From positions 46,438,001 to 46,502,000 of the forward strand of contig NC_086107.1 in NCBI RefSeq assembly GCF_963921235.1: a stretch of DNA of 64,000 nt, given 5' to 3'. A program made the position numbers and the translations under genes. This document shows, one piece after another, positions 501 to 52,301 of this stretch. The stretch's first letter is position 1; every line of letters begins with the position of its first letter. Under the pieces are notes generated by a model that was given only the letters and a program-made list of their open reading frames with translations, had not been told where the DNA came from and ran no database searches. The DNA is from Mobula hypostoma. Its lineage: Eukaryota.

Positions 501-529
501 ATGTTTCATGTTTTATGTTTGAAGTCTGA

Positions 530-3619: not shown

Positions 3620-3958
3620 GTGCTTTGGAATTGGAGATATTTTCCTCTCCACTGGAAGTTTCAGTAAATGAAGATGTTCTTCTAAAATGCATATACAGTA
3701 AACCAGAACATGATCTCAGCCATGTAGCTGTTCAATGGTCTTATAAATCTCAAACATCTCAGAAGGAACTGTATATATTTAATGGAGGGAATCATCAACC
3801 TAACAGAAGAGGTGCACAGATTTTTGAAGATGCATTACAGAATGGAAATGCTTCACTTTACCTCCCGAAAGTACAACTTAATGAAGAAGGAAATTATACC
3901 TGCACTGTTTATCTCACCCCAAATAAAGTTGAAAAGACTTCAAAGATGCTTGTTTCAG
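3620..3958 (+). CDS. NCR3LG1-like: Ig V-set exon of a B7-family / NCR3LG1(B7-H6)-like receptor or ligand
   Basis: ttttaaag acceptor, 339 nt, phase 1-1, gtaag donor; EDVLLKC..VAVQW..GNASLYLPKVQLNEEGNYTCTVYLTP has the canonical V-set C-W-C and resembles the B7-H6 family DASL.L..V.L..EG.Y.C.V..TP motif; family-level assignment only. Confidence 0.9.
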
Positions 3959-5846: not shown

Positions 5847-6143
5847 TCAAACCAAAAGTCAATGTATTTATGCAAAAAGAGGAGAACTTTGCAATATGTG
5901 AAGTAAAGGAATTTTATCCAAAGGAAATTACAGTCAGTTGGTTAAAAGTACTAAATGAAAAAGTGGAAGTTATTTCAAAAAATCAGTCTATTGATGATAT
6001 CGTTATGGACAAAAGTGGGACATTTAGTCTTACCACTAAAGTAAGAGTAGAATCGATGGTGAGTAGTTCTGCCAAGTACATCTGTACAGTGAAGCACAAA
6101 GAGTTCCATGGAAATTTTACACTGGCAAGCAACATGGCTAAAG
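5847..6143 (+). CDS. NCR3LG1-like: Ig C1-set exon of the same gene
   Basis: ctctcttccacag acceptor, 297 nt, phase 1-1, gtaag donor; KPKVNV..AICEVKEFYPKEITVSW..GTFSLTT..YICTVKH is the C1-set signature. Confidence 0.92.
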
Positions 6144-6637: not shown

Positions 6638-6739
6638 AACAAGAACAAAGTAAGCTGACTGGTGGAATTATCTTTGGCATTATCATGCTACTTTGTGTTC
6701 TGGGTTTTGGAATTTGTATCTGGAAGAAAAAATCTAAAG
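6638..6739 (+). CDS. NCR3LG1-like: Transmembrane exon
   Basis: ttttaacag acceptor, 102 nt, phase 1-1, gtaacg donor; EQEQSKLTGGIIFGIIMLLCVLGFGICIWKKKSK is a hydrophobic helix followed by a basic stop-transfer segment. Confidence 0.9.
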
Positions 6740-14989: not shown

Positions 14990-15200
14990 CAGACATAATC
15001 TCTTGTGTCAGATTGAAGAAAATACTTTAGAGCTGGGTCACACTTCCCATGATCCCTAGTGGCAAGGATTTGGCAGCTGTAGCGTCTGCAGGCAGCCATC
15101 GTTGATACAGTATATACATCGATCTCCTTTTGAACCGAAACGTGAAAAAAACAACCTAACATTTTCTAAAGAGATAAAGTTCACCAGTACTCTGACTTTT
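14990..15200. repeat. Local duplication segment Y, copy 1 (paralog of about 16355-16550)
   Basis: Shared agattgaaga..tcccatgatccctagtg..tgcaggcagccatc..atctccttttgaacc. Confidence 0.8.
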
Positions 15201-16550: not shown

Positions 16551-17270
16551 TAGCATTTCTGCAAATTGCGTAAATGCAGCACTTATTTAGTGTAATAAAA
16601 ATGCAGGAAATATAATTTCTGGACAGAAATTATAGTTCGGTGTTAAAACAAAGAAGTTTTAAGTTCAGATATGGACAGCACTTGATATACTAAAAGAGAG
16701 CATTTAGTATTAACTTGGCTCTATATCAAGAAATAAAATTCTCTATGTGGATATACATTACAAGTAATTATCAAAGCAAGATGTGGAAAGACTTAAAATG
16801 TTAAAATATTTAAAATTTAAATATCCTCTTGAACCAGGGTAGATAATCTCACTCATGCCAACTCTGAGCTGATTCCACACCCAATGGACACTTTCAAGGA
16901 CTATGTAACTCACAATCTCAGTGTTATTTATTTACTTATTTTTTATTTACACAGTGCATCTTTTTTGCACATTAGTTGTTTGTCAGTTTTTGATTGTGCA
17001 TACCTACTGTTTGTCTTCATTCTACTCTGAATGTCTGCAAGAAAACAATTCTCCAGGTAGTATATGATGACATATACAGTATGAACTTTTACAGTAAATT
17101 TACTTTGAACATTTTGTAGTTATTTGCAACAAATACAGAATAGCTCAATGGGGAAAAGTGTGAAAATTCAAAACCTGCACTCTGAATTAAGTGTTGATAC
17201 ATTTTATATATTGTGTGGAAAGCTTAGATTCGTATATATAATTAAATATCTTTTAAACTAGCATCTGTAG

Positions 17271-17354
17271 ATACCAGTAAGTGTGAATCAATGGAAAGAG
17301 GAGATCAAAACTGCGAACTGCTTTTGACCAGTCAGGATCCCCAACTTCCAATAG
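17271..17354 (+). CDS. Candidate cytoplasmic exon (84 nt, DTSKCESMERGDQNCELLLTSQDPQLPI)
   Basis: gcatctgtag acceptor, consensus AG|gtaagt donor, open frame, phase 1-1 compatible with the TM exon. Confidence 0.75.
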
Positions 17355-21060: not shown

Positions 21061-21065
21061 TAGGA

Positions 21066-27406: not shown

Positions 27407-27484
27407 AGGACACCCAGGCAAAGCCTGATGAACATAAAAGAGAAGAAGAGGAGCCGAATAATCAGGATTCCGGAGAAAATGAAG
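27407..27484 (+). CDS. 78-nt micro-exon E78 (EDTQAKPDEHKREEEEPNNQDSGENE)
   Basis: tttcctttattttcattcag acceptor, AAG|gtaata donor, open, phase 1-1. Confidence 0.7.
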
Positions 27485-27787
27485 GTAATATGACTGTTTG
27501 GACACACAGAGAATTGTTGAAAACTTCACGAGTTTTTCTTTGCATTGCCATTTCTGTAGATTACACACGATTATCTTCTGGTTAATTCTGTGAATCGTGT
27601 CACCATTATTCAGTAACCAGCACAATCAGAAGATTGTTTAAATACTCAACTTTCCTACCAGCACTGACATTACATGTTATTTAAGAGCATTGCACACCAT
27701 GGATGTAAACATGTAAAATCTGTCTCACCTTCACAATGCATGGTCAGTACATCCCAGGTTCCTCACAAATCCTTTCTTTGAATTCAG

Positions 27788-27832
27788 ATCAGAATGCAAA
27801 AAGCACAGTAGGAAAACCAGCCAAAGATACAG
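27788..27832 (+). CDS. 45-nt micro-exon E45 (DQNAKSTVGKPAKDT)
   Basis: ctttctttgaattcag acceptor, CAG|gtaagt donor, open, phase 1-1. Confidence 0.7.
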
Positions 27833-29006
27833 GTAAGTTAAGGCACAAATTTTATGAAAAAAAACAGAAAAAAATGCAAGTATTTACAGTATTTTGTCTG
27901 TTTCTTTTTCTTGCAATTGCATAACACCTTAAGTAGTTGGAGTGGGAAATATCTGTTGTTCCTGTACTGTGGCCTGCAAATTCTTTATCCAGAGAAATTT
28001 TCTAAAGATATTCCCTGCTTAATGCCTGGAAGATCCCTGGAAAATTCATTCCTCTATTCCGTAGCAAAGTTGAACAATCTACATTCCACCAGATTATCTG
28101 AAGATGATTCCTTGAAGACGGTCTAGTCCACTAATTGAAGCAGTCATGTAAATAATCCTCATCCTCCCTTGATCATATATTCATGGCCCTTACTACTGGG
28201 GCAGCACTCTTTAGTCACTGAAGATATTCTGTAATACAACAGAAATGCATGAAATCACAACAGACAAACAGCTGTTTAGAAAGTGTTAGAAATGTCAGGC
28301 CTCTGTCAGTGATGTCATCAGTACAAATTAGTGGTTTTCTTCCAGTTTCTGTAAATTGCATGTGATTGCCATCTCTTAATTCCAGTGAACGTAATCAGCA
28401 TAATTCACTCACCATCACACACAGGGAATATTTCCTTAAATTCCTCAAAGAAAATATCCTTATATTGATGATAGTTTTGAATTGGAACAGAAGAAGAAAT
28501 AGAACCAAATGGACATGCAAATGAGTTAAGGGATGAAAGTAAGGAAAATCCGGAAAAAAATGCAGCAGGAATATTGTTTATAATTGGAAGGCTTCTGTTG
28601 CAAACAAAGTGAGATTCACTTTTCATTAATCCCTTCAAAATTCCAGTGTAGATTGCCTACTTAATGTCTGGAAAATTCCTGAAGATACTGTATAAATTCC
28701 ACCTGCCAGCCTCTCTGGGGCAAAGTAGATTGCTGAAATTTGCAACAGGACTTGAGGCACGTGTCTCTTTTCCACAGACCTGCATTTCATAGACATGACC
28801 ATGCCAAATTAGTATAACTAGACTAGAATTATTCCACAATTCCTCCATTTTAAAAGTATCTGGAATTTTGCTTTGGAACCGAAACATACAAGTTCAGTTG
28901 TTGCTACATGTTTTTACGTGTGGTAAAATTCTGGCTATGTATCACTGTTCTGTCACTTTTACATTGCTTGAGTTGATGGAGACACATTTCCTTTATTTCG
29001 ATTCAG

Positions 29007-29084
29007 TGGGCACCCGGGAAAAGCCTGATGAACGTAAAAGAAAAGAAGAGGATTCGACTAACCAGGATTCAGGAAAAAATGAAG
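29007..29084 (+). CDS. E78 copy
   Basis: Intact AG/GT, 78 nt, open frame. Confidence 0.6.
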
Positions 29085-29383
29085 GTAATATGTTTGTTGG
29101 GACACACAGTTGTTGAAAACTTGGTGAGCTTTTGCTTGCATTGCAGTTTCTGTAGATTACACAAAATTATCTTCTAGTTGATTCTGTGAATACTGTCACC
29201 ATTATTCAGTAACCAGCACACCCAGAAGATTGTTTAAATATTCAACTATCCTACCAGCACTGAGTTTACAAATTATTTGAGAGCATTGCACACCATGGAT
29301 GTAAACATGCAAAATCTGTGTCACCATCAAAATCCATGGTCAGTAAATCCCAGGCTCCTCACATATCCTTTCTTTGATTTCAG

Positions 29384-29428
29384 ATCCGCATGCAAAAAGC
29401 ACAGTAGGAAAAGCAGCCAAAGATGCAG
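29384..29428 (+). CDS. E45 copy
   Basis: Intact AG and CAG|gtaagc, 45 nt, open frame. Confidence 0.6.
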
Positions 29429-30601
29429 GTAAGCTAAGGCACAAATTTTATGAAAAAATACAGAAAAATTGCAAGAATTTACAGTATTTTGTCTGTTTCT
29501 TTTTCTTGCAATCGCATAACACCTTAAGTAGCTGGAGTGGGAAATATCTGTTGTTCCTGTACTGTGGCCTGCAAATTCTTTATCCAGAGAAATTTTCTAA
29601 AGATATTCCCTGCTTAATGCCTGGAAGATCCCTGGAAAATTCATTCCTCCATTCTGTAGCAAAGTTGAACAATCTATATTCCACCAGATTATCTGAAGAT
29701 GATTCCTCGAAGATGGTCTAGTCCACTAATTGAAGCAGTCATGTAAATAATCCTCATCCTCCCTTGATCATATATTCATGGCCCTTACTACTGGGGCAGC
29801 ACTCTTTAGTCACTGACTATATTCTGTAATACAACAGAAATGCATGAAATCACAACAGACAAACAGCTGTTTAGAAAGTGTTAGAAATGTTAGGCCTCTG
29901 TCAGTGATGTCATCAGTACAAATTAGTGGTTTTCTTCCAGTTTCTGTAAATTGCATGTGATTGCCATCTCTTAATTCCAGTGAACGTAATCAGCATAATT
30001 CACTCACCATCACACACAGGGAATATTTCCTTAAATTCCTCAAAGAAAATATCCTTATATTGATGATAGTTTTGAATTGGAACAGAAGAAGAAATAGAAC
30101 CAAATGGACATGCAAATGAGTTAAGGGATGAAAGTAAGGAAAATCCGGAAAAAAATGCAGCAGGAATATTGTTTATAATTGGAAGGCTTCTGTTGCAAAC
30201 AAAGTGAGATTCACTTTTCATTAATCCCTTCAAAATTCCAGTGTAGATTGCCTACTTAATGTCTGGAAAATTCCTGAAGATACTGTATAAATTCCATCTG
30301 CCAGCCTCTCTGGGGCAAAGTAGATTGCTGAAATTTGCAACAGGACTTGAGGCACGTGTCTCTTTTCCACAGACCTGCATTTCATAGACATGACCATGCC
30401 AAATTAGTATAACTAGACTAGAATTATTCCACAATTCCTCCATTTTAAAAGTATCTGGAATTTTGCTTTGGAACCGAAACATACAAGTTCAGTTGTTGCT
30501 ACATGTTTTTACGTGTGGTAAAATTCTGGCTATGTATCACTGTTCTGTCACTTTTACATTGCTTGAGTTGATGGAGACACATTTCCTTTATTTCGATTCA
30601 G

Positions 30602-30679
30602 TGGGCACCCGGGAAAAGCCTGATGAACGTAAAAGAAAAGAAGAGGATTCGACTAACCAGGATTCAGGAAAAAATGAAG
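30602..30679 (+). CDS. E78 copy
   Basis: Intact AG/GT, 78 nt, identical to the 29007 copy. Confidence 0.6.
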
Positions 30680-30978
30680 GTAATATGTTTGTTGGGACAC
30701 ACAGTTGTTGAAAACTTGGTGAGCTTTTGCTTGCATTGCAGTTTCTGTAGATTACACAAAATTATCTTCTAGTTGATTCTGTGAATACTGTCACCATTAT
30801 TCAGTAACCAGCACACCCAGAAGATTGTTTAAATATTCAACTATCCTTCCAGCACTGAGTTTACATGTTATTTGAGAGCATTGCACACCATGGATGTAAG
30901 CATGCAAAATCTGTCTCACCATCAAAATCCATGGTCAGTAAATCCCAGGCTCCTCACATATCCTTTCTTTGATTTCAG

Positions 30979-31023
30979 ATCCGCATGCAAAAAGCACAGT
31001 AGGAAAAACAGCCAAAGATGCAG
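30979..31023 (+). CDS. E45 copy
   Basis: Intact AG and CAG|gtaagc, 45 nt, open frame. Confidence 0.6.
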
Positions 31024-31658
31024 GTAAGCTAAGGCACAAATTTTATGAAAAAATACAGAAAAAATGCAAGTATTTACAGTATTTAATCTGTTTCTTTTTC
31101 TTGCAATTGTATAACACCTAAAGTTAGTTGGAGTGAATTGTTGTTCCTCTACTGTTGTCTCCAAATTCTTTACCCGGGAAATTTTCTGAAGACATTGCCT
31201 GCTTAATGCCTGGAAAATCCCTGGAAAATTCATTCCACCATTCTGTAGCAAAGTTGAACAGCCTACATTCCACCAGATTATCTGAAGATGATTCCTTGAA
31301 GACGGTCTAGTCCACTAATTGGAGCGGTCATGTAAATAATCCTCCTCCTCCCTTGATCATATATTCATGGCGTTTACTACTGGGGCTGCACTCTCTAGTC
31401 TCTGCCTATACTCTGCAATACAACAGCACTGCATAATTTCACAAAATACAAACAGCTGTTTAGTAAATGTCAGAAATGTCATGCCTCTGTCAATGTTGTC
31501 ATCGATACAAATTAGTGGTTTTCTTCCAGCTTCTGTAAATTGCATTTGATTGCCATCTCTTAATTCCTGAGAACGTTATCAGGATAATTCACTTACCATC
31601 ACACACAGGGAATATTTCCCTAAATTCCTGAAAGACAATATCCTTTCATTGATGACAG

Positions 31659-31721
31659 TTTCGAATGGAACAGAAGAAGAAATAGAACCAAATGGACATG
31701 CAAATAAGTTGAGGGATGAAA
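31659..31721 (+). CDS. 63-nt micro-exon E63 (VSNGTEEEIEPNGHANKLRDE)
   Basis: ttcattgatgacag acceptor, AAA|gtaagg donor, 63 nt, open, phase 1-1. Confidence 0.6.
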
Positions 31722-32106
31722 GTAAGGAAAATCCATAAAAAACTGCAGGAATATTGTTTACAATTGCAAGGCTTCTGTTGCAAACAACGTGAGATTCACT
31801 TTTCATTAATCCCTTCAAAATTTCGGCAAACATTGCCTGCTTTATGCCTGGGAAATTATTGAAGATACTGTATACATTCCATCTGCCAACCTCTCTGGGC
31901 AAAGTAGATTGCTGAAATTTGCAACAGGACTTGAGGAACGTGTCTCTTTTCTACAGACCTGCATTTCATAGACAGGACCATGCCAAATTAGTGTAACTGG
32001 GCGAGAATTATTCCACAATTCATCCATTTTAAATGTATCTGGAATTTTGCTCTGGAACCGACACATAATATGTATTATTGTATAACTTTTAAACTGGCAT
32101 CTGTAG

Positions 32107-32180
32107 ATTCCAGTTAGTGCGAACCAATGAAAAAAGCAGATCAAACCTGCCAACCACTTACTCACAGATAACATTTCAGT
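32107..32180 (+). pseudogene. Dead paralog of the 84-nt exon
   Basis: Same acceptor context (gcatctgtag) and downstream intron as 17271; AAG changed to TAG at 32115-32117; gtaagt donor missing. Confidence 0.7.
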
Positions 32181-32983
32181 GATTGACATGTCTGATTATA
32201 GTAAAGGCAAAATCTCCATTTTTAATGATGCACTCTGAACACACCACATTATATAAAGATGTTAAAAACAGTTTAGACATGTTCTCAGAATTGAAGAAAA
32301 AGCTCATATAATGTCAAGGTAGTTCTATATGTTGCACACACTTAATATACATTGTACAGAAATACTGAAGTGGGGGATATGATTTTCAAAACTTTCCATG
32401 ACTCTATTCAACACCAGGGAATCAGGTCAGTTTCTCTTCTGGTTGATGAGTGTTCAATTCACTTCCCTTCAAATGTCACCTCAACTAAAGGCTTAAGTTT
32501 AATATTTCAACTGGAAGCTACATCTCTTTACATCAAAAACAAGAATGGAAAGCAAAATCACTTGCATAATGGGTGATTTCATGGATAGCCTTTGTCCAGG
32601 TATTAGCTAAGTGGTCACAATTGTCCTTTCAAAGATCCAAATTTGCGGTTTAATTCATAATTCTTAAAAAAAAAGAATCTGACTACTCTGATATCCTCTA
32701 CTTATTAAAATATAAAGATAAGTGAAAAATAAACAGTCAATGTTTCAATTCCTTCATATCAAATGTACATCATAAAAACAAATTTATTATATTTGCTTCA
32801 TGACTTATGTCTTGGCTCAATATGTTGTCTGTTTATTCACCTCTATAGGTGCTGCCTGGCTTGCTGAGTTCCTCAGCATTTTGTGTGTGCTGCTCAAGAT
32901 ATCTAGCATCTGCAGAATCTCTTATGTCAGAGAAATGAAATATTGTGTTTATATTACATCATTTTTTTTTGCTTGTTCCTCAG

Positions 32984-33409
32984 CTCCTACAATTAGTGAT
33001 ATAGCAAATCCCTTTCAACTCTGGCATGGTAAAACTGCCTACCTGAATTGGAATGTTACCATTCCCACTGGAGTTCCAATGGAAATTAAAATATTCCTGA
33101 AGAGAAAAATAAAGGAAGAAACAGAGAAAAAACAACTATTTCACTGGAAATTGTTAGCAGAACAACTACATGGACCACAAAAAGTGACTGCACCTCTGAA
33201 AGATATACGTGATCCATGCGAGGAAGATAATTTCTTCACTGCTGATGTACCAGATTTACAACGCGCAAACGAGGGGGGTTTTCACATACCCTGCAGTATT
33301 AAAGTGCAGCCTGATATATCCACAGATAATGGGACTGAGTTAATCATTGAAATTTATCCGGACTCTTTGGAGAAAGTCTGTACTTCAACAGTACTTCAAG
33401 TTACATCAG
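32984..33409 (+). CDS. 426-nt exon encoding a divergent Ig(C1)-like domain
   Basis: Long T-rich tract ending ttgttcctcag, open 142 codons, TCAG|gtaaat donor, phase 1-1; APTISDIANPFQLWHGKTAYLNWNVT..IKIFLKR..FHIPCSIKVQPDISTDNGTELIIEI..LQVTS. Confidence 0.75.
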
Positions 33410-33954
33410 GTAAATTGTGCACATTGTTGCTCACAGAAATACTTTCAAATGTGAAGAGTAATTTAGCTTCTCTTTGTATGGAGGCAGCCGAATCTGTCTA
33501 TTATTCCTGCTTTTCATTTAAATTTCCAGGAAGGACAATTTTTCTTTTAAATTTTCAAAAATGCAGTATCATCAGAATGAGTTTGTATTGGAAGAATAAT
33601 GTACCATTTATTCTTTGAGACAGTGACCAAACAGTCCATATACGTGTGCTAAGTACCTCATGATGCTTTTTATGTATAGTTTCTGCAGTTGTAAAATACA
33701 TGGGACACAATACAGCATGCTGTTCTACAAAGGAAAATGCCAGTGATCTATCAACTAATAGGTTAGGACAAAGTTGATTACACAGTTGCTTCGGAATGTA
33801 GTACTCCCTCTATATTCCACTGAAATACCACCTCAACAGGGTGCTGAAATCTGAAGGTGGAGCCATCAACAGAAACCTTCTGAAACATAACCAAGAACAC
33901 AGACAACTGGGTCAAAATGAATAGTTAGTCATTTTAGTTAGTTAGTTAGAGCAC

Positions 33955-36225
33955 CCCTGTGGCCGTTCCCACCAATAATAAGTATATCATTTTGGATACT
34001 GTTGATGGGGACGACCTACCAGGGACAAGTTACAGTGTTTGCGTCTCTGGCACTGAGACGGGACCCTCAGCTCAGAAGGGAAGGAGGGAAAAGAGGAGAG
34101 CAGTAGTGATAGGGGATTCGATAGTTTGGGGGACAGAAAAGAGGTTTTGTGGAAGAGATAGATAATCCCCGATGGTTTGTTACCTCCCTGGTGCCAAGGT
34201 CCGCGATATCTCAGATCGAGTTCTCAGTATTCTCGAGAGGGAGGGTGAACAGCTGGATGTCGTGGTCCATGTAGGGACCAATGACGTGGATAGGAAGAGT
34301 GAGGAGGTTCTGAAAGGCTAGTTTAGGGAGTTAGGTGCCAAGTTAAAGGACAGGACCTCCAGGATAGCAATCTCAGGATTGCCACCAGTGCCACATGCAG
34401 GTGGGTTTAGAAATAGTAAGATAACGCAGATCAACAAGTGGCTGGAGACATAGTGCAGGAGGGAGGGCTTCAGATTTGTAGATAATTCGGCAGTTTTCCA
34501 GGGAAGGTGGAACCTGTTCTGGCGGGACGGTTTACATCTTAACTGGAGGGGGACAAATATTCTTGCAGGTAGGTTTGCTAGAGAGGCTCCAGTGGATTTA
34601 AACTAGATACAAGGGGGGAGAGGAACCAGACTGTAGGAACAGATGTAGGAGAGAAGGAAGGAAAAGGAGATAGTAAAGTTGTTTTCACGGTCAGTAATAA
34701 ACAAAGAGAAAGAGGTGGAAAATTTCTTAAATGCATTTATTTTAATGCTAGGAGCATTGAAAGAAAGGTGGATGAGCTTAGAGCATGGATTGATACCTGG
34801 AAGTATGATGATGTAGCTATTAGTGAAACATGGCTGCAGGAGGGGTGTGATTGGCAACTAAATATTCCTGGATTTCATTGCTTCAGGTGTGATAGACTCG
34901 GAGGGACAAGAGGGGGAGGTGTTGCATTGCTTGTCAGACAGAATATTACAGCGGTGCTCTGGCAGGATAGATTAGAGGGCTCGTCTAGGGAGGCTATTTG
35001 GGTGGAATTGAGGAATGGGAAAGGTGTAGTAACACTTATAGGGGTGTATATTAGACCACCAAATGGGGAGCGAAAATTGGAGGAGCAAATTTGTAAGGAG
35101 ATAGCAGATATTTGTAGTAAGCACAAAGTTGTGATTGTGGGAGACTTTAATTTTCCACACATAGACTGGGAAGCCCATACTGTAAAAAGACTGGATGGTT
35201 TGGAATTTGTAAAATGTGTGCAGGATAGTTTTTTGCAGCAATACATAGAGGTACCAACTAGAGAAGGGGCAGTGTTGGATATCCTGTTAGGGAATGAGAT
35301 AGGTCAGGTGACAGAGGTTTGTGTTGGGGAGCACTTCGGGACCGGTGATCACTGTTGTAGCATGGATGAAATTACCAGAGAGACAGAGTCACTGGTAGAT
35401 ACAAAGTAGCTTCTTTATTCGACACAACAAGGTACAGTAGGCACCTTACTAATGGAGATGCTTTCCGCAGAAAGGTCTGCTAGCTAAATGTGGGGTCAAT
35501 ATTTATATGCTAAATACAAAGGTAATTGCTACTTAAAAGTTATAGACAATGCTTCCCATTGAAGCTACATACAAAATATCACACCATCCTTTCCTCCTGA
35601 CGCCAACATGTCTGGGTTGGTATCCACAGACTTTAGGAATGTAAGTTAAGTCTATTTATTTGGCATTTCCGGTGCTAACATAGAAGGCAATTAATATTTA
35701 TAATGTATAGGTGATACTGCCTTCGAAACTACAGCATCAGGTCAAACTACCAGAAGCATCTGGTATTCACACCTTTTGGGAAGCCCATTGTGGTGGACTC
35801 AATCCACAGTCCTTTGTCAAACAGATAAAATAGAAGTCTGGTGGCCAAAGTCATTTAAGTGTAAACAAATCATCTACCCAAAAAGAAATCCACTCTAACA
35901 ATCACAATACCATTAGTTTCAATATAATTATGGAGAAGGATAGGTCTGGACCCAGGGTTGAGATTTTTGATTCAAGAAAGGCTAACTTTAAGGAAATGCA
36001 AAAGGATTTAGAAGAGTGGATTGGGACAATTTGTTTTATGGGAAGGATGTAATAGAGAAATTGAGGTCATTTCAAGATGAAATTTTGAGGGTACAGAATC
36101 TTTATGTTCCTGTTAGGTTGAAAGGAAAGGATAAAAGTTTGAGAAAGCCATGGTTTTCAAGGGTTATTGGAAACTTGGCTCGCAAAAAGAGAGATATCTA
36201 CAATAAATATAGGCAGCATGGAGTA
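33955..36225 (+). mobile_element. CR1-type LINE (ORF1 esterase remnant + APE endonuclease), interrupted by a solo LTR
   Basis: AVVIGDSIV and VHVGTND esterase motifs; ORF 34768-35409 DVAISETWL..VIVGDFNFPHIDW..EGAVLDILL. Confidence 0.92.
35353..35900 (-). mobile_element. Solo LTR (548 bp)
   Basis: TGTT..AACA termini, perfect 5-bp TSD ATCAC (35348-35352, 35901-35905); TATA-like and AATAAA signals on the minus strand. Confidence 0.85.
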
Positions 36226-37258
36226 AATATAACCATATAACAATTACAGCACGGAAAAAGGCCATCTCGGCCCTTCTAGTCCATACCGAACTCTTACTCT
36301 CACCAAGTCCCACCGACCTGCACTCAGGCCATAACCCTCCTTTCCTCTCCTGTCCATATAGCTGTCCAATTTAACTTTAAACGACAACATCAAACCTGCC
36401 TCAACCACTTGTGCTGGAAGCTCATTCCACACAGCTACCACTCTCTGAGTAAAGAAGTTCCCCATCATGTTACCCCTAAACTTTTGCCCTTTAACTCTCA
36501 ACTCATGTCCTCTTGTTTGAATCTCCCCCACTCTCAATGGAAAAAGCCTATCCACGTCAACTCTGTCTATCCCCCTCATAATTTTAAATACCTCTATCAA
36601 GTCCCCCCTCAACCTTCTACACTCCAAAGAATAAAGACCCAACTTGTTGAACCTTTCTCTGTAACTTAGGTGATGAAACCCAGCTAACATTCTAGTAAAC
36701 CTTCTCAGTACTCTCCCTATTTTGTTGACATCTTTCCTATAATTCAGTGACCAAAATTGTACACAATACTCCAAATTTGGCCTCACCAATGCCTTGTACA
36801 ATTTCAACAATACATCCCAACTCCTATACTCAATGCTCTGATTTATAAAGGCCAGCATAACAAAAGCTTTCTTCACCACCCTATCCACATGAGATTCCAC
36901 CTTCAGGGAACTATGCACCATTATTCCTAGATCCCTCTGTTCTACTGCATTCTTCAATGCCCTACCATTTACCATGTATGTCCTATTTTGATTAGTCCAA
37001 CCAAAATGTAGCACCCCACATTTATCAGCCTACCTCATTATCCACAACACCACCTATCTTAGTATCATCTGCATGCTTACTAATCCAATTTACCTCCCCA
37101 TCATCCAGATCATTAATGTATATAACAAACAACATTGGACCCAGTACAGATCCCTGAGGCACACCACTAGTCACCGGCCTCCAATCTGACAAACAGTTAT
37201 CCACCACTGCTCTCTGGCTTCGCCCATCCAGCCACTGCTGAATCCATTTTACTACTTT
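36226..37258 (-). mobile_element. CR1-type LINE 3' fragment
   Basis: ORFs [19 protein letters not shown] and RPNLEYCVQFWS..RRLRGDLIE; tail at 36226-36245. Confidence 0.92.
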
Positions 37259-37260
37259 GA

Positions 37261-37475
37261 TATTAGATTAGATTAGATTAGATTCAACTTTATTGTCATT
37301 GTGCCAAGTACAGATACAAAGCCAATGAAATGCATTTAGCATCTAACCAGAAATGCAAAGAATAGTTATTTAAAAAATAACCGTGAATAAAAATGTGCTA
37401 CAGCACACAAATATATAAGTACTGAGACAGTACAATACAGATGCAATACTGCTTAGCGCTGTGATGAGAGGTTAC
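37261..37475 (-). mobile_element. LINE 3' end with (TCTAA)n tail
   Basis: Reverse complement of 57850-58059. Confidence 0.75.
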
Positions 37476-37698: not shown

Positions 37699-37743
37699 AT
37701 CCAAATGCAAAAAGCACAGGAGGAAAAACAGCCAAAGATGCAG
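37699..37743 (+). CDS. E45 copy (intact)
   Basis: AG and CAG|gtaagt, 45 nt, DPNAKSTGGKTAKDA. Confidence 0.6.
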
Positions 37744-41163: not shown

Positions 41164-41241
41164 AGGAAACCCAGCCAAAGCCTGATGAAGATAAAGGAGA
41201 GCAGCAGGAGCTGCCTAATCAGGATTCAGGAGAAAATAAAG
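41164..41241 (+). CDS. E78 copy
   Basis: Intact AG/GT, open (EETQPKPDEDKGEQQELPNQDSGENK). Confidence 0.6.
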
Positions 41242-42757
41242 GTAATATGTTTGTTGGAACACACATAGAATTGTTGAAAAATTCATGATTTTTGCTTGCA
41301 TTGCAGTTTCTGTAGATTACAGACGATTATCTTGAAGTTAATTCTGTGAATACTGTCACCATTATTCAGTAACCAGCACACCCATCAGATTGTATAAATA
41401 TTCAACATTCCTACCAGCACTGAGTTTACATGTTATTTGAGAGCTTTGTACACCATGGATGTAAACATGCAAAATCTGTCTCATCATAACAATCCATGTT
41501 CACTATATCCCAGGTTCCTCACATATCCTTTCTTAGATTTCAGATCCGAATGCACAAAGCACAGTAAGAAAACCAGCCAAAGCTGGAGATAAGTTAAGGC
41601 ACAAATTATATGAAAAGAAAGCAGAAAAAATACACGCATTTACAGTATTTTGTCTGTTTTTTTTCTTGCAATTGCATAATACCTAAAGTAGTTGAAGCGA
41701 CAATTAATTCTTGTTCCTCTACTGTGGCCTGCAAATTCTTTATACCAAGCAATTTTCTGAAGATATTGCCTGCCTAATGCCTGTAAAATCCCTGGAAATT
41801 CAGAACTCCATTCCATAGCAAAGTTGAATAATCTACATTGCACCAGATTATCTGAAGATGATTCCTTGAATACGATCCAGTCCACTGATTAAAAGCAGTC
41901 ATGTAAATAATCCTCATCCTGCCTTCATCATATAATCATGGCGCTTGCTACTGGGGCAGCACTCTTTATTCTCTGACTATACTCTGCAATACAACAGAAA
42001 TGCATGAAATCACAACAGACAAACAGCTGTTTAGAAAGTGTTAGAAATGTCATGCCTTTCTCAATGTAGTCATCGATACAAATTAGCCGTTTTCTTCCAG
42101 CTTCTGTAAATTGCATGTGATTGTCATCTATTAACTCCTGTGAATGTTATCAGCATAATTCACTTGCCATCACACACTGGGAATATTTCCCTAAATTCCT
42201 CAAAGAAAATATCCTTATATTGATGATAGTTTTGAATTGGAACAGAAGAAGAAATTGAACCAAATGGACGTGCAAATGAGTTAAGGAATGAAAGTAAGGA
42301 AAATCTGGAAAAAGTGCCGGAATATTGTTTAGAATTGCAAGGCTTCTGTTGCAAACAAAGTGAGATTCACTTTTCATTAATCTCTTCAAAACTACTGCAA
42401 ACATTTCCTGCTTAATAACTGGGAAATTACTGAAGATACTGTATACATTCCATCTGCCAACCTCTCTGGGGCAAAGTAGATTACTGAAATTTGCAACAGG
42501 AATTGAGGCACGCGTCTCATTTATACAGTCCTCCATTTCATAGACAGGACCATGCCAAATTAGTGTAACTGGACTAGAATTAGTCCACAATTCCTACATT
42601 TGTAAAGTATCTGGTATTTTGCGTTGGAACCGACACATTCAAATTAGGTTGTGGCTACACGTTTTTACGTGTGGTAAAATTCTGGCTATGAATCACTGTT
42701 CTTTCACTTTTACATTGCTTGAGTTGATGGAGACACATTTCCTTTATTTCGATTCAG

Positions 42758-42835
42758 AGGAAACCCAGCCAAAGCCTGATGAAGATAAAGGAGAGCAGCA
42801 GGAGCTGCCTGATCAGGATTCAGAAGAAAATAAAG
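42758..42835 (+). CDS. E78 copy
   Basis: Intact AG/GT, open. Confidence 0.55.
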
Positions 42836-44352
42836 GTAATATGTTTGTTGGAACACACAGAGAATTGTTGAAAAATTCATGATTTTTGCTTGCATTGCAG
42901 TTTCTGTAGATTACAGACGATTATCTTGAAGTTAATTCTGTGAATACTGTCACCATTATTCAGTAACCAGCACACCCATCAGATTGTATAAATATTCAAC
43001 ATTCCTACCAGCACTGAGTTTACATGTTATTTGAGAGCTTTGTACACCATGGATGTAAACATGCAAAATCTGTCTCATCATAACAATCCATGTTCACTAT
43101 ATCCCAGGTTCCTCACATATCCTTTCTTAGATTTCAGATCTGAATGCACAAAGCACAGTAATAAAACCAGCCAAAGCTGGAGATAAGTTAAGGCACAAAT
43201 TATATGAAAAGAAAGCAGAAAAATTGCACGCATTTACAGTATTTTGTCTCTTTCTTTTTCTTGCAATTGCATAATACCTAAAGTAGTTGAAGCGACAATT
43301 AATTCTTGTTCCTCTACTGTGGCCTGCAAATTCTTTATACCAAGCAATTTTCTGAAGATATTGCCTGCCTAATGCCTGTAAAATCCCTGGAAATTCAGAA
43401 CTCCATTCCATAGCAAATTTGAATAATCTACATTGCACCAGATTATCTGAAGATGATTCCTTGAATACGATCCAGTCCACTGATTAGAAGCAGTCATGTA
43501 AATAATCCTCATCCTGCCTTCATCATATAATCATGGCGCTTGCTACTGGGGCAGCACTCTTTATTCTCTGACTATACTCTGCAATACAACAGAAATGCAT
43601 GAAATCACAACAGACAAACAGCTGTTTAGAAAGTGTTAGAAATGTCATGCCTTTCTCAATGTAGTCATCGATACAAATTAGCCGTTTTCTTCCAGCTTCT
43701 GTAAATTGCATGTGATTGTCATCTATTAACTCCTGTGAATGTTATCAGCATAATTCATTTGCCATCACACACTGGGAATATTTCCCTAAATTCCTCAAAG
43801 AAAATATCCTTATATTGATGATAGTTTTGAATTGGAACAGAAGAAGAAATTGAACCAAATGGACATGCAAATGAGTTAAGGAATGAAAGTAAGGAAAATC
43901 TGGAAAAAGTGCCGGAATATTGTTTAGAATTGCAAGGCTTCTGTTGCAAACAAAGTGAGATTCACTTTTCATTAATCTCTTCAAAACTACTGCAATCATT
44001 TCCTGCTTAATATCTGGGAAATTACTGAAGAAACTGTATACATTCCATCTACCAACCTCTCTGGGGTAAAGTAGATTGCTGAAATTGGCAACAGGAATTG
44101 AGGCACGCATCTCATTTATACAGTCCTGCATTTCATAGACAGGACCATGCCAAATTAGTGTAACTGGACTAGAATTAGTCCACAATTCCTACATTTGTAA
44201 AGTATCTGGTATTATGCGTTGGAACCGACACATTCAAATTAGGTTGTGGCTACACGTTTTTACGTGTGGTAAAATTCTGGCTATGAATCACTGTTCTTTC
44301 ATTTTTACGTTGCTTGAGTTGATGGAGACACATTTCCTTTATTTCGATTCAG

Positions 44353-44430
44353 AGGAAACCCAGCCAAAACCTGATGACGATAAAGGAGAGCAGCAGGAGC
44401 CGCCTAATCAGGATTCAGGAGAAAATAAAG
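44353..44430 (+). CDS. E78 copy (type B)
   Basis: Intact AG/GT, open; identical to the 50639 copy. Confidence 0.55.
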
Positions 44431-45937
44431 GTAATATGTTTGTTGGAACACACATAGAATTGTTGAAAAATTCATGATTTTTGCTTGCATTGCAGTTTCT
44501 GTAGATTACAGACGATTATCTTGAAGTTAATTCTGTGAATACTGTCACCATTATTCAGTAACCAGCACACCCATCAGATTGTATAAATATTCAACATTCC
44601 TACCAGCACTAAGTTTACATGTTATTTGAGAGCTTTGCACACCATGGATGTAAACATGCAAAATCTGTCTCATCATAACAATCCATGTTCACTATATCCC
44701 AGGTTCCTCACATATCCTTTCTTAGATTTCAGATCCGAATGCACAAAGCACAGTAATAAAACCAGCCAAAGCTGGAGATAAGTTAAGACACAGATTATAT
44801 GAAAAGAAAGCAGAAAAATTGCACGCATTTACAGTATTTTGTCTGCTTCTTTTTCTTGCAATTGCATAATACCTAATGTAATTGAAGCGACAATTAATTC
44901 TTGTTCCTCTACTGTGGCCTGCAAATTCTTTATTCCAAGCAATTATCTGAAGATATTGCCTGCTTAAAGCCTGGAGAATTCAGAACTCCATTCCGTAGCA
45001 AAGTTGAATAATCTACATTGCTCCAGATTATCTAAAGATGATTCCTTGAATATGGTCCAGTCCACTGATTAAAAGCAGTCATGTAAATAATCCTCATCCT
45101 GCCTTGATCATATATTCATAGCGCTTGCTACTGGGGCAGCACTCTTTATTCTCTGACTATACTCTGCAATACAACAGAAATGCATGAAATCACAACAGAC
45201 AAACAGCTGTTTACAAAGTGTTAGAAATGTCATGCCTCTGTCAATGTTGTCATCGATACAAATTAGCTGTTTTCTTCCAGCTTCTGTAAATTGCATGTGA
45301 TTGTCATCTCTTAACTCCTGTGAATGTTAACAGCATAATTCACTTGCCATCACTCACTGGGAATATTTCCCTAAATTCCTCAAAGAAAATATCCTTATAT
45401 TGATGATAGTTGTGAATTGGAACAGAAGAAGAAATTGAACCAAATGGACATACAAATGAGTTAAGGGATGAAAGTAAGGAAAATCTGGAAAAAGTGCCGG
45501 AATATTGTTTAGAATTGCAAGGCTTCTGTTGCAAACAAAGTGAGATTCACTTTTCATTAATCTCTTCAAAATTTCTGCAAACATTTCCTGCTTAATATCT
45601 GGGAAATTACTGAAGAAACTGTATACATTCCATCTGCCAACCTCTCTGGGGTAAAGTAGATTCCTGCAATTTGCAACAGGAATTGAGGCACGCGTCTCAT
45701 TTATACAGTCCTGCATTTCATAGACAGGACCATGCCAAATTAGTGTAACTAGACTAGAATTAGTCCACAATTCCTACATTTGTAAAGTATCTGGTATTTT
45801 GCGTTGGAACCGACACATTCAAATTAGGTTGTGGCTACACGTTTTTACGTGTGGTAAAATTCTGGCTATGAATCACTGTTCTTTCACTTTTACATTGCTT
45901 GAGTTGATGGAGACACATTTCCTTTATTTCGATTCAG

Positions 45938-46015
45938 TGGATACCCAGGCAAATCCTGATGAAGATAAAAGCGAACAGGAGGAGAAGCCTAATCAGGTTT
46001 CAGGAGAAAACAAAG
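45938..46015 (+). CDS. E78 copy (type C)
   Basis: Intact AG/GT, open (DTQANPDEDKSEQEEKPNQVSGENK). Confidence 0.55.
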
Positions 46016-47522
46016 GTAATATGTTTGTTGGGACAAACAAAGAATTGTTGAAAAATTCATGATTTTTGCTTGCATTGCAGTTTCTGTAGATTACAGATGA
46101 TTATCTTGAAGTTAATTCTGTGAATAGTGTCACCATTATTCAGTAACCAGCACACCCATCAGATTGTATAAGTATTCAACATTCCTACCAGCACTAAGTT
46201 TACATGTTATTTGAGAGCTTTGCACACCATGGATGTAAACATGCAAAATCTGTCTCATCATAGCAATCCATGTTCACTCTCTCACAGGTTCCTCACATAT
46301 CCTTTCTTAGATTTCAGATCCGAATGCACAAAGCACAGTAAGAAAACCAGCCAAAGCTGGAGATAAGTTAAGACACAGATTATATGAAAAGAAAGCAGAA
46401 AAATTGCACGCATTTACAGTATTTTGTCTGTTTCTTTTTCTTGCAATTGCATAATACCTAAAGTAATTGATGCGACAATTAATTGTTGTTCCTCTACTGT
46501 GGCCTGCAAATTCTTTAACCCAAGCAATTTTCTAAAGATATTGCCTGCTTAACACCTGGAGAATTCAGAACTCCATTCCATAGCAAAATTGAATAATCTA
46601 CATTGCACTAGATTATCTGAAGATGATTCCTTGAATCTGGTCCAGTCCACTGATTAAAAGCAGTCATGTAAATAATCCTCATCCTGCCTTGATCATATAT
46701 TCATGGCGCTTGCTACTGGGGCAGCACTCTTTAGTCTCTGACTATACTCTGCAATACAACAGAAATGCATGAAATCACAACAGACAAACAGCTGTTTAGA
46801 AAGTGTTAGAAATGTCAGGCCTCTGTCAATGCAGTCATCGATACAAATTAGCGGTTTTCTTCCAGCTTCTGTAAATTGCATGTGTTTGTCATCTCTTAAC
46901 TCCTGTGAATGTTATCAGCATAATTCACTTGCCATCACTCACTGGGAATATTTCCCTAAATTCCTCAATGAAAATATCCTTATATTGATGATAGTTGTGA
47001 ATTGGAACAGAAGAAGAAATTGAACCAAATGGACATACAAATGAGTTAAGGGATGAAAGTAAGGAAAATCTGGAAAAAGTGCCGGAATATTGTTTAGAAT
47101 TGCAAGGCTTCTGTTGCAAACAAAGTGAGATTCACTTTTCATTAATCTCTTCAAAATTTCTGCAAACATTTCCTGCTTAATATCTGGGAAATTACTGAAG
47201 AAACTGTATACATTCCATCTGCCAACCTCTCTGGGGTAAAGTAGATTCCTGCAATTTGCAACAGGAATTGAGGCACGCGTCTCATTTATACAGTCCTGCA
47301 TTTCATAGACAGGACCATGCCAAATTAGTGTAACTAGACTAGAATTAGTCCACAATTCCTACATTTGTAAAGTATCTGGTATTTTGCGTTGGAACCGACA
47401 CATTCAAATTAGGTTGTGGCTACACGTTTTTACGTGTGGTAAAATTCTGGCTATGAATCACTGTTCTTTCACTTTTACATTGCTTGAGTTGATGGAGACA
47501 CATTTCCTTTATTTCGATTCAG

Positions 47523-47600
47523 TGGATACCCAGGCAAATCCTGATGAAGATAAAAGCGAACAGGAGGAGAAGCCTAATCAGGTTTCAGGAGAAAACAAAG
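47523..47600 (+). CDS. E78 copy (type C)
   Basis: Intact AG/GT, open. Confidence 0.55.
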
Positions 47601-50600
47601 GTAATATGTTTGTTGGGACAAACAAAGAATTGTTGAAAAATTCATGATTTTTGCTTGCATTGCAGTTTCTGTAGATTACAGATGATTATCTTGAAGTTAA
47701 TTCTGTGAATAGTGTCACCATTATTCAGTAACCAGCACACCCATCAGATTGTATAAGTATTCAACATTCCTACCAGCACTAAGTTTACATGTTATTTGAG
47801 AGCTTTGCACACCATGGATGTAAACATGCAAAATCTGTCTCATCATAGCAATCCATGTTCACTCTCTCACAGGTTCCTCACATATCCTTTCTTAGATTTC
47901 AGATCCGAATGCACAAAGCACAGTAAGAAAACCAGCCAAAGCTGGAGATAAGTTAAGACACAGATTATATGAAAAGAAAGCAGAAAAATTGCACGCATTT
48001 ACAGTATTTTGTCTGCTTATTTTTCTTGCAATTGCATAATACCTAAAGTAATTGATGCGACAATTAATTGTTGTTCCTCTACTGTGGCCTGCAAATTCTT
48101 TAACCCAAGCAATTTTCTAAAGATATTGCCTGCTTAACACCTGGAGAATTCAGAACTCCATTCCATAGCAAAATTGAATAATCTACATTGCACTAGATTA
48201 TCTGAAGATGATTCCTTGAATCTGGTCCAGTCCACTGATTAAAAGCAGTCATGTAAATAATCCTCATCCTGCCTTGATCATATATTCATGGCGCTTGCTA
48301 CTGGGGCAGCACTCTTTAGTCTCTGACTATACTCTGCAATACAACAGAAATGCATGAAATCACAACAGACAAACAGCTGTTTAGAAAGTGTTAGAAATGT
48401 CAGGCCTCTGTCAATGCAGTCATCGATACAAATTAGCGGTTTTCTTCCAGCTTCTGTAAATTGCATGTGTTTGTCATCTCTTAACTCCTGTGAATGTTAT
48501 CAGCATAATTCACTTGCCATCACACACTGGGAATATTTCCCTAAATTCCTCAATGAAAATATCCTTATATTGATGATATTTTTGAATTGGATCAGAAGAA
48601 GAAATTGAACCAAATGGACATGCAAATGAGTTAAGGGATGAAAGTAAGGAAAATCCGGAAAAATGTGCCGGAATATTGTTCAGAATTGCAAGACTTCTTT
48701 TGCAAACAAAGTGAGATTCACTTTTCATTAATCCCTTCAAAATTTCAGCAGACATTGCCTGCTTAATGTCTGGGAAATTACTGAAGATACTGTATAAATT
48801 CCATCTGCCAACCTCTCTGGGGTAAAGTAGATTGCTGAAATTTGCAACAGGAATTGAGGCACGTGTCTCTTTTCTACAGTCCTGCATTTCATAGACATGA
48901 CCATGCCAAATTAGTGTTACTGGACTAGAATTAGTCCACAATTCCTACATTTGTAAAGTATCTGATATTTTGCTTTGGAACCGACACATTCAAATTCAGT
49001 TGTGGCTACACGTTTTTATATGTGGTAAAATGCTGGCTATCAACCACTGTTCTGTCACTTTTACTGATGAAGATAAAAGAGAACGGGAGGAGCCGCCTAA
49101 TCAGGATTCAGGAGAAAATAAAGGTAATATGTTTGTTGGGACACAGAGAATTTTTGAAAATGTCATGATTTTTGCTTGCACTGCAGTTTCTGTAGATTAC
49201 AGACGATTATCTTGAAGTTAATTCTGTGAATACTGTCACCATTATTCAGTAACCAGCACACCCATCAGATTGTATAAATATTCAACATTCCTACCAGCAC
49301 TGAGTTTACATGTTATTTGAGAGCTTTGTACACCATGGATGTAAACATGCAAAATCTGTCTCATCATAACAATCCATGTTCACTATATCCCAGGTTCCTC
49401 ACATATCCTTTCTTAGATTTCAGATCCGAATGCACAAAGCACAGTAATAAAACCAGCCAAAGCTGGAGATAAGTTAAGGCACAAATTATATGAAAAGAAA
49501 GCAGAAAAATTGCACGCATTTACAGTATTTTGTCTCTTTCTTTTTCTTGCAATTGCATAATACCTAAAGTAGTTGAAGCGACAATTAATTCTTGTTCCTC
49601 TACTGTGGCCTGCAAATTCTTTATACCAAGCAATTTTCTGAAGATATTGCCTGCCTAATGCCTGTAAAATCCCTGGAAATTCAGAACTCCATTCCATAGC
49701 AAATTTGAATAATCTACATTGCACCAGATTATCTGAAGATGATTCCTTGAATACGATCCAGTCCACTGATTAGAAGCAGTCATGTAAATAATCCTCATCC
49801 TGCCTTCATCATATAATCATGGCGCTTGCTACTGGGGCAGCACTCTTTATTCTCTGACTATACTCTGCAATACAACAGAAATGCATGAAATCACAACAGA
49901 CAAACAGCTGTTTAGAAAGTGTTAGAAATGTCATGCCTTTCTCAATGTAGTCATCGATACAAATTAGCCGTTTTCTTCCAGCTTCTGTAAATTGCATGTG
50001 ATTGTCATCTATTAACTCCTGTGAATGTTATCAGCATAATTCACTTGCCATCACACACTGGGAATATTTCCCTAAATTCCTCAAAGAAAATATCCTTATA
50101 TTGATGATAGTTTTGAATTGGAACAGAAGAAGAAATTGAACCAAATGGACATGCAAATGAGTTAAGGAATGAAAGTAAGGAAAATCTGGAAAAAGTGCCG
50201 GAATATTGTTTAGAATTGCAAGGCTTCTGTTGCAAACAAAGTGAGATTCACTTTTCATTAATCTCTTCAAAACTACTGCAATCATTTCCTGCTTAATATC
50301 TGGGAAATTACTGAAGAAACTGTATACATTCCATCTACCAACCTCTCTGGGGCAATGTAGATTACTGAAATTTGCAACAGGAATTGAGGCACGCATCTCA
50401 TTTATACAGTCCTGCATTTCATAGACAGGACCATGCCAAATTAGTGTAACTGGACTAGAATTAGTCCACAATTCCTACATTTGTAAAGTATCTGGTATTA
50501 TGCGTTGGAACCGACACATTCAAATTAGGTTGTGGCTACACGTTTTTACGTGTGGTAAAATTCTGGCTATGAATCACTGTTCTTTCATTTTTACGTTGCT

Positions 50601-50638
50601 TGAGTTGATGGAGACACATTTCCTTTATTTCGATTCAG

Positions 50639-50716
50639 AGGAAACCCAGCCAAAACCTGATGACGATAAAGGAGAGCAGCAGGAGCCGCCTAATCAGGAT
50701 TCAGGAGAAAATAAAG
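50639..50716 (+). CDS. E78 copy (type B)
   Basis: Intact AG/GT, open. Confidence 0.55.
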
Positions 50717-52223
50717 GTAATATGTTTGTTGGAACACACATAGAATTGTTGAAAAATTCATGATTTTTGCTTGCATTGCAGTTTCTGTAGATTACAGACG
50801 ATTATCTTGAAGTTAATTCTGTGAATACTGTCACCATTATTCAGTAACCAGCACACCCATCAGATTGTATAAATATTCAACATTCCTACCAGCACTAAGT
50901 TTACATGTTATTTGAGAGCTTTGCACACCATGGATGTAAACATGCAAAATCTGTCTCATCATAACAATCCATGTTCACTATATCCCAGGTTCCTCACATA
51001 TCCTTTCTTAGATTTCAGATCCGAATGCACAAAGCACAGTAATAAAACCAGCCAAAGCTGGAGATAAGTTAAGACACAGATTATATGAAAAGAAAGCAGA
51101 AAAATTGCACGCATTTACAGTATTTTGTCTGCTTCTTTTTCTTGCAATTGCATAATACCTAATGTAATTGAAGCGACAATTAATTCTTGTTCCTCTACTG
51201 TGGCCTGCAAATTCTTTATTCCAAGCAATTATCTGAAGATATTGCCTGCTTAAAGCCTGGAGAATTCAGAACTCCATTCCGTAGCAAAGTTGAATAATCT
51301 ACATTGCTCCAGATTATCTAAAGATGATTCCTTGAATATGGTCCAGTCCACTGATTAAAAGCAGTCATGTAAATAATCCTCATCCTGCCTTGATCATATA
51401 TTCATAGCGCTTGCTACTGGGGCAGCACTCTTTATTCTCTGACTATACTCTGCAATACAACAGAAATGCATGAAATCACAACAGACAAACAGCTGTTTAG
51501 AAAGTGTTAGAAATGTCATGCCTCTGTCAATGTTGTCATCGATACAAATTAGCGGTTTTCTTCCAGCTTCTGTAAATTGCATGTGTTTGTCATCTCTTAA
51601 CTCCTGTGAATGTTATCAGCATAATTCACTTGCCATCACTCACTGGGAATATTTCCCTAAATTCCTCAATGAAAATATCCTTATATTGATGATAGTTGTG
51701 AATTGGAACAGAAGAAGAAATTGAACCAAATGGACATACAAATGAGTTAAGGGATGAAAGTAAGGAAAATCTGGAAAAAGTGCCGGAATATTGTTTAGAA
51801 TTGCAAGGCTTCTGTTGCAAACAAAGTGAGATTCACTTTTCATTAATCTCTTCAAAATTTCTGCAAACATTTCCTGCTTAATATCTGGGAAATTACTGAA
51901 GAAACTGTATACATTACATCTGCCAACCTCTCTGGGGTAAAGTAGATTCCTGCAATTTGCAACAGGAATTGAGGCACGCGTCTCATTTATACAGTCCTGC
52001 ATTTCATAGACAGGACCATGCCAAATTAGTGTAACTAGACTAGAATTAGTCCACAATTCCTACATTTGTAAAGTATCTGGTATTTTGCGTTGGAACCGAC
52101 ACATTCAAATTAGGTTGTGGATACACGTTTTTACGTGTGGTAAAATTCTGGCTATGAATCACTGTTCTTTCACTTTTACATTGCTTGAGTTGATGGAGAC
52201 ACATTTCCTTTATTTCGATTCAG

Positions 52224-52301
52224 TGGATACCCAGGCAAATCCTGATGAAGATAAAAGCGAACAGGAGGAGAAGCCTAATCAGGTTTCAGGAGAAAACAAA
52301 G
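52224..52301 (+). CDS. E78 copy (type C)
   Basis: Intact AG/GT, open. Confidence 0.55.

Follow-up and report, generated by a model that had tools for sequence, protein, structure and literature searches.

A predicted immunoglobulin-type domain, probably cytosolic, in the tail of a B7-H6-like protein of a devil ray

The window, by which we mean the whole stretch of 64,000 nucleotides analysed here (Mobula hypostoma assembly GCF_963921235.1, contig NC_086107.1, positions 46,438,001 to 46,502,000 of the forward strand), carries exons of a B7-H6 (NCR3LG1)-like gene. They encode an immunoglobulin (Ig) ectodomain, a transmembrane (TM) segment and a long tail that is assembled from micro-exons and one large domain exon. 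The features are as follows, with positions counted from the first letter of the window and the supporting evidence in brackets.

3620..3958, plus strand: V-set Ig exon of the B7-H6-like gene, 339 nt, phase 1-1 (tblastn, 91% identity; AG/GT edges)
5847..6143, plus strand: extracellular C1-set Ig exon, 297 nt, phase 1-1 (tblastn; Pfam C1-set in homologues)
6638..6739, plus strand: TM exon, 102 nt, phase 1-1, encoding LTGGIIFGIIMLLCVLGFGICIW followed by KKKSK (tblastn; hydropathy)
17262..17354, plus strand: first tail exon, cyt1, 93 nt, phase 1-1 (tblastn; AG/GT edges)
27407..31023, plus strand: upstream micro-exon block of three ~1.6-kb units, acidic low-complexity linker (tblastn; splice sites; contig junctions)
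27407-27484, 29007-29084 and 30602-30679, plus strand: upstream A exons, 78 nt, phase 1-1
27788-27832, 29384-29428 and 30979-31023, plus strand: upstream B exons, 45 nt, phase 1-1
32079..32159, plus strand: cyt1-type exon copy with an in-frame stop (stop read by tblastn; copy skipped by a contig)
32984..33409, plus strand: exon of a disulfide-less, C1-set-derived Ig domain, 141 residues, behind the TM segment (boundaries; homologues; fold model; RNA contigs)
37699..37743, plus strand: B-type micro-exon to which the domain exon is joined on its 3' side (contig piece identical to this copy)
41164..52301, plus strand: downstream micro-exon block (tblastn; splice sites; contig end)
41164-41241, 42758-42835, 44353-44430, 45938-46015, 47523-47600, 50639-50716 and 52224-52301, plus strand: downstream intact A exons

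Joined in order, the V, C1, TM and cyt1 exons, three A-B pairs, the domain exon, a B exon and an A exon yield a single unbroken reading frame. The segment encoded by the TM exon is the sole strongly hydrophobic stretch of the assembled protein. Behind it follows a tail of ~490 residues, in which acidic micro-exon linkers accompany one folded Ig domain; outside that domain the tail is strongly acidic, with 123 Asp and Glu against 67 Lys and Arg in ~490 residues. The A exons encode acidic peptides typified by EDTQAKPDEHKREEEEPNNQDSGENE and the B exons peptides typified by DPHAKSTVGKAAKDA, both kinds bounded by AG/GT sites. A search of positions 1-3619 for a leader-like open reading frame found none, and the leader exon presumably lies upstream of the window start.

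The micro-exon array shows several features of its own. All A-exon peptides end in a DSGEN(E/K) or NSGENE motif, which recurs along the tail (for example in 27407-27484). Some of these peptides are identical: the copy at 44353 equals that at 50639, and the copies at 45938, 47523 and 52224 are the same. The stretch 44353-52301 (plus strand) contains a ~6.3-kb higher-order duplication of 1.59-kb units. At 41543-41587 (plus strand), the only downstream B-type copy whose donor was read, GA replaces the expected GT, so this copy is probably dead, in agreement with the Mobula birostris model, whose second half has A-only repeats. Some 0.8 kb before the domain exon stands the stop-bearing cyt1 copy. 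Hemitrygon splices a cyt1 exon straight to the domain, and cyt1 and domain may form an old unit.

The domain exon spans 426 nt in phase 1-1, with 141 whole codons, a split codon at each end and AG/GT edges (cctcag/CTCCT at the 5' side, ACATCAG/gtaaat at the 3' side). It begins 26.2 kb downstream of the TM exon and is flanked on both sides by blocks of a ~1.59-kb tandem array bearing the 78-nt and 45-nt micro-exons. A preliminary description of this DNA, made from its letters, had read here an open 142-codon phase 1-1 exon lying 26 kb past the TM exon between two micro-exon arrays; the two array blocks and the distance agree with this, and the exon itself is borne out by its edges and by in-frame splicing in RNA contigs. 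HMMER against 1.8 billion representative proteins returned 20 matches to the domain peptide, 11 of them at E<1e-30, and a Pfam search with the same peptide gave no match at E up to 10. The exon is real, standing far above what a chance open reading frame would show.

Transcript evidence comes from contigs of four runs from the same organism, aligned to 30500-33700, whose run type is listed as 'RNA?', a guess in the record. In three of the four runs, which belong to one study, contig depth falls on exons and is zero in introns, and spliced contigs from three runs cover the domain exon with 0 mismatches. One contig of 596 nt reads in order through the B exon 30979-31023, the entire domain exon, a second B exon and the start of an A exon. 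The intron behind its junction 31023/32984 has GT..AG ends, and the junction 30679/30979 is present in contigs as well. The second B piece differs from the 30979 copy at 3 positions and matches the 37699-37743 copy exactly, and the trailing end of the contig is an exact match to the A exon at 41164 or 42758. Transcription of the domain exon, and its in-frame splicing to tail micro-exons at either end, follow from this contig and its GT..AG joint. The contigs are short and cover the local splice chain, stopping before the 26-kb stretch that leads back to the TM exon. Hence the cDNA check that the preliminary description had proposed, from the TM exon to 32984, is answered in part: RNA contigs support the local splicing, and the longer connection, which no contig spans, agrees with RefSeq collinearity and with the Callorhinchus gene. 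The link from TM segment to domain is drawn from the reading frame, collinearity and other species.

We placed the gene in its family through its relatives, whose gene models are automatic predictions. The closest homologue is Mobula birostris XP_072128570.1, a protein of 708 aa that is 90% identical over the domain and runs in the order signal peptide, V, C1, TM, acidic repeats, tail domain, acidic repeats. When aligned to the window by tblastn, it is collinear exon by exon, with identities of 91% for V, 88% for C1 and 88-90% for the domain; between these two rays, the domain is thus as conserved as the ectodomain. Compared with solved chains, the Mobula birostris V-C1 ectodomain has human B7-H6 as its top three matches (E 6e-22 to 1e-21), followed by CD276 (9e-14) and TAPBPR (1e-12). 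NCBI names two of the homologues natural cytotoxicity triggering receptor 3 ligand 1-like (NCR3LG1-like), and the features expected of a B7-H6/NCR3LG1 member, a V-set plus C1-set ectodomain (by Pfam) and one TM segment, are present. By these comparisons, the devil-ray gene codes for a type I membrane protein of the B7-H6 (NCR3LG1) kind.

The preliminary description had suggested a search for the order V-C1-TM-Ig in shark, ray and amphibian proteins, and this order is indeed found from chimaera to ranid frogs. In models from about a dozen species of chimaera, sharks, rays and ranid frogs, the same tail-domain type follows the TM anchor in 1-7 copies, with seven in Heterodontus and three to five in Callorhinchus. 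It lies behind a single hydrophobic segment in Callorhinchus, Heterodontus, Scyliorhinus, Stegostoma, Hemitrygon, Rhinoraja, Cetorhinus and ranid frogs. This span of lineages puts the origin close to the root of the jawed vertebrates.

The same models bear on whether the exon might belong to a different gene, so that models joining it to a B7-H6-like ectodomain would be annotation artefacts. In the ray, 26 kb and several repeats separate the TM exon from the domain, and the contigs lack the full path between them. Against such an artefact, contigs join the domain in frame to the micro-exon types that follow the TM segment in the model, and independent models of about a dozen species give the same order. 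The assembled reading frame between the two exons contains neither a leader nor a second hydrophobic segment, as the preliminary description had also read it. The Callorhinchus gene is the most telling, at only 5.7 kb for the whole. Its combined C1 and TM exon ends at 12491 (locus coordinates), and its domain exons lie at 12751-13182, 13900-14331 and 14632-15060, each closed by gtaag. One intron of 260 bp parts the TM-bearing exon from the first domain copy, which starts about 12 residues after the TM segment. With so little between them, reading the two parts as separate genes is untenable, and we consider an artefact of this kind very improbable for the ray as well.

Ranid frog homologues show a further variation. 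A crude hydropathy scan counts 1, 3 or 5 hydrophobic segments in them, always an odd number, and where there are three or five they stand between C1 and the tail domain. The arrangement can be written TM1-KKGWRPW-(TMa-loop-TMb)n-RFLWKYFT, and these may be multi-pass B7-H6-like proteins.

We modelled the domain to examine its fold. AlphaFold2 on the single sequence gave an unusable model (pLDDT 55); with an alignment of 24 homologous copies it reached pLDDT 90.1 and pTM 0.84. The latter model shows an all-beta sandwich, its strands spanning residues 10-13, 18-26, 32-42, 45-56, 90-93, 99-107, 118-125 and 131-140. In VIA-align, the best 50 matches were all members of the Ig superfamily, mostly of V frame; their Z reached 11.4, and the rmsd was 2.4-2.9 A across 108-115 residues. 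Among the matches listed are the human B7-H6 V domain (Z 10.7) and a titin Z1Z2 chimera (Z 10.1). Foldseek against PDB and Swiss-Prot models returned Ig domains only, at TM-scores of 0.45-0.62. The predicted model thus superposes on solved Ig domains as an Ig-like beta-sandwich. An Ig fold had earlier been assigned by eye, with AlphaFold and Foldseek proposed as the check; run on this peptide, they point to the same fold and to no other. Two sequence-level or feature-level searches were uninformative: the 24-copy profile found no PDB sequence at E up to 10, and an ESM Atlas feature search gave only generic Ig-like or unnamed clusters with scores under a useful level. A complex prediction for two copies of the domain scored 0.00, which bears neither for nor against a homodimer.

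Profile comparison indicates where this domain came from. With hhalign, the 24 tail-domain copies align to the extracellular C1 domains of the same proteins with 96.3% probability (E 1.7e-9). The corresponding value against their V domains is 12.9% (E 0.0022), and a control of C1 against V gave 7% (E 0.0049). We rejected a V-domain origin and preferred C1. Pfam C1-set (PF07654) matches are weak, occurring in 5 of the 24 copies with a best value of 9.2e-5, and absent from the ray exon at E up to 10. The data support descent of the tail domain from the C1-set domain of its own gene family, judged by sequence, with a divergence that takes it below the Pfam membership threshold.

The C1 register can be followed through the peptide. 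'AYLNWNVTIPTGVPMEIKIF' corresponds to the B-strand pattern LxCxVxxFYPxxIxIxW, 'GGFHIPCSIKV' to the E strand DGTFSVSSxLxV, and 'DISTDNGTELIIEIY' to the E-F turn and F strand DDGxxYxCxVxH. What tail domain and C1-set (PF07654) share is LxWxVxGFxPxxIxI in strands B and C, GTFxVxxxI in strand E and DDGAELxVEVxH in the E-F turn and F strand. They differ in that the tail domain lacks both cysteines and the C-strand Trp, has ~35 extra residues and sits behind a membrane anchor. Its B strand reads 'LNWNV', and the Trp (Trp22), which most copies share, aligns to the Cys that never varies in strand B of this family's C1 domains, as the preliminary description had proposed. The F-strand Cys is replaced by Ile121, with Ile, Val or Leu at this position in 24/24 copies, and the claim of the preliminary description that the canonical disulfide is lost is therewith upheld at both ends of the bond. 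The C-strand Trp position of a classical C1 domain varies among the tail-domain copies; the B-F disulfide packed on that Trp, which characterises the C1-set, is thus not a property of the tail domain. Two cysteines outside the canonical positions are common, Cys103 in 23/24 copies and Cys78 in 17/24, and Trp54, Arg40 and Ile34 are invariant across the alignment.

The ~35 residues inserted between strand C and strands D/E add one more strand, which holds the invariant Trp54 ('LFHW'), and a long loop. It is this insertion that gives the fold its V-sized look: the predicted topology has the dimensions of a V frame, an additional C' strand and a lengthy C'-D excursion included. The C1-like strand pattern noted earlier therefore stands by sequence (96.3% for C1 against 12.9% for V), with the refinement that the modelled frame is V-sized.

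A domain that has lost its disulfide might be a relic of evolution: a C1 exon that was duplicated, became stuck in the tail and continues to be spliced in without a function of its own. The copy number, which runs from 1 to 7 between species, and a surrounding tail built of recent tandem duplications would be in keeping with this. Several observations speak against it. The domain is 88-91% conserved relative to Mobula birostris, the same as V and C1, and the linkers diverge much faster than it does. From chimaera to frog it can still be recognised, its core residues being invariant, and AlphaFold2 models it confidently from a shallow alignment. We therefore think a relic improbable.

On which side of the membrane does this domain lie? 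Apart from the leader, each full-length protein contains one 19-residue window with a mean hydropathy of at least 2.3, the next best being no higher than 1.5, and basic residues come directly after the TM segment (KKKSK in the ray). The domain is C-terminal to this one TM segment, whose positively charged flank is on the tail side, which is what sequence rules expect of the cytosolic tail of a type I protein. The canonical cysteines are invariant in the ectodomain (10/10 for C1, 9/9 for V) and absent from the tail domain. N-glycosylation sequons number 1.7-2.0 per 100 aa in the ectodomain, with conserved sites present, and 0.72 per 100 aa in the tail domain, with none conserved; the ray copy has an NVT and an NGT site. 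Taken from sequence, the most likely location of the tail domain in the membrane-anchored isoform is the cytosol. We also considered a topology of the IGSF1 type, in which an internal signal sequence keeps later Ig domains luminal, and rejected it since the protein has no second hydrophobic segment before the domain.

The working form might nonetheless be secreted or luminal, with the TM exon skipped and the tail Ig domain acting outside the cell in a long soluble B7-H6-like molecule. Heterodontus francisci has a RefSeq isoform, X3 (XP_067902349.1), in which exactly the TM exon is missing (...LDTDPVE/GKTIPKE...). As all exons in the window are phase 1-1, that of the TM segment included, skipping 6638-6739 would keep the frame, and a secreted form is therefore possible in the ray too; Cys78 and Cys103, moreover, are largely conserved. 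Other evidence points away from such a form. The TM segment is retained by the majority of models across all species, nearly all tail copies have replaced both canonical cysteines that are invariant in the ectodomain, and the tail domain has no conserved glycosylation site. The C1 domains of long-tail paralogues, described below, often have only one Cys of the pair (by eye), which is unusual for a secreted C1 domain. In frogs, hydrophobic segments were apparently added in pairs, by crude hydropathy, and pairs would keep the tail on the same side. A secreted working form is in our judgement unlikely, and a cytosolic position of the domain is the reading we carry forward. The protein predicted for isoform X3 would itself be secreted, and its seven 'tail' domains would then lie in the lumen or outside the cell.

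Our main reading is accordingly that the exon encodes a folded Ig-type, C1-derived domain in the tail beyond the TM segment of a B7-H6-like protein, most likely cytosolic, and we put its probability at roughly 0.7.

Comparison with known systems sets the arrangement in context. Human B7-H6 (NCR3LG1), the NKp30 ligand, has in common with the ray gene a signal peptide, a V-set domain, a C1-set domain and a single TM segment. Its tail, which Brandt and colleagues are said to have described in 2009, is reportedly short, without an Ig domain, and Gag-like with signalling motifs. The ray tail by contrast has ~490 residues, with acidic linkers and a folded Ig domain. Immune-surface Ig domains are expected outside the cell, and the tails of such proteins are expected to be short carriers of motifs. 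Butyrophilins are relatives of B7 proteins with a V-C ectodomain, one TM segment and a cytosolic B30.2 domain that exerts inside-out control. They and the ray protein both have a folded tail module, which is an Ig fold in the ray and B30.2/SPRY in butyrophilins. Titin, the myosin-binding proteins and filamin contain cytosolic Ig sandwiches without the canonical disulfide; these belong to soluble proteins of the cytoskeleton and are of the I-set or filamin type, and we found no sequence relation between them and the tail domain.

Closer relatives are the long-tail B7-H6-like paralogues (Cetorhinus XP_078405426.1 and Hemitrygon models), which have the same ectodomain and TM segment as the ray gene. 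Their first domain after the TM segment matches the ray tail-domain type at E 1e-28 to 1e-47. The series then continues from this ray-type domain through a 126-residue intermediate, which matches both profiles and retains both cysteines, to canonical C1 domains, several of which have lost one cysteine of the pair. Whereas the tails of these paralogues run on with the intermediate and four or more canonical C1 domains, the window gene is without these: it has only the first, divergent domain type, and the remainder of its tail consists of acidic micro-exons.

We found no description in the literature of Ig domains in a B7-H6 tail, in a search of incomplete coverage, so that priority elsewhere is possible; public gene models of homologues are labelled 'uncharacterized protein'. 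What we present as new is the disulfide-less, divergent first-domain type standing alone among micro-exon linkers, together with its RNA-backed splicing and its C1 origin.

These features suggest how such a tail might work. The domain would serve as a protein-docking module carried on long, flexible, acidic and disordered spacers, and it could link the ectodomain of the NK ligand with some partner in the cytosol, so as to anchor or cluster the protein or to control its display from the inside out. The nearest functional parallel is the cytosolic B30.2 domain of butyrophilins. The folded domain is the conserved unit, and the linkers are lineage-specific and lengthen as the 1.6-kb unit duplicates. 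A more specific version, which we offer as speculation and think rather doubtful, is that the Ig module is a cytosolic sensor or coupler that binds a stress, viral or cytoskeletal protein and controls the display or conformation of the ectodomain. Such a device would be an Ig-fold parallel to inside-out signalling through butyrophilin B30.2 domains; its age would reach back to the first jawed vertebrates, and mammals would have lost it.

As the gene models stand, an NK-ligand family has retained at least one folded Ig domain beyond its membrane anchor in chimaeras, sharks, rays and frogs. The Trp and aliphatic core in place of a disulfide is what would be expected for life in the cytosol, and the preliminary description had linked the lost disulfide to such a location. 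If the location is true, the B7-H6/NKp30 axis would have an unrecognised intracellular side in non-mammals, and the tail domain would be a natural C1-set domain re-engineered to fold without its disulfide.

Repeats account for two further observations in the window. Retroelement remains lie inside the long introns and split the micro-exon array, at 19100-23500 and 25900-27100 (both stretches on both strands) and at 34000-37300; they include integrase-like and gag-like open reading frames with reverse-transcriptase and endonuclease fragments, and an integrase-like segment occurs twice, at ~19.1-20.3 kb and 25.9-27.1 kb. Just upstream of the domain exon, contigs of all four runs pile up to a very high summed depth over 32845-32930, and many different ones continue into unrelated sequence; this short element is a dispersed repeat with transcription in many contexts.
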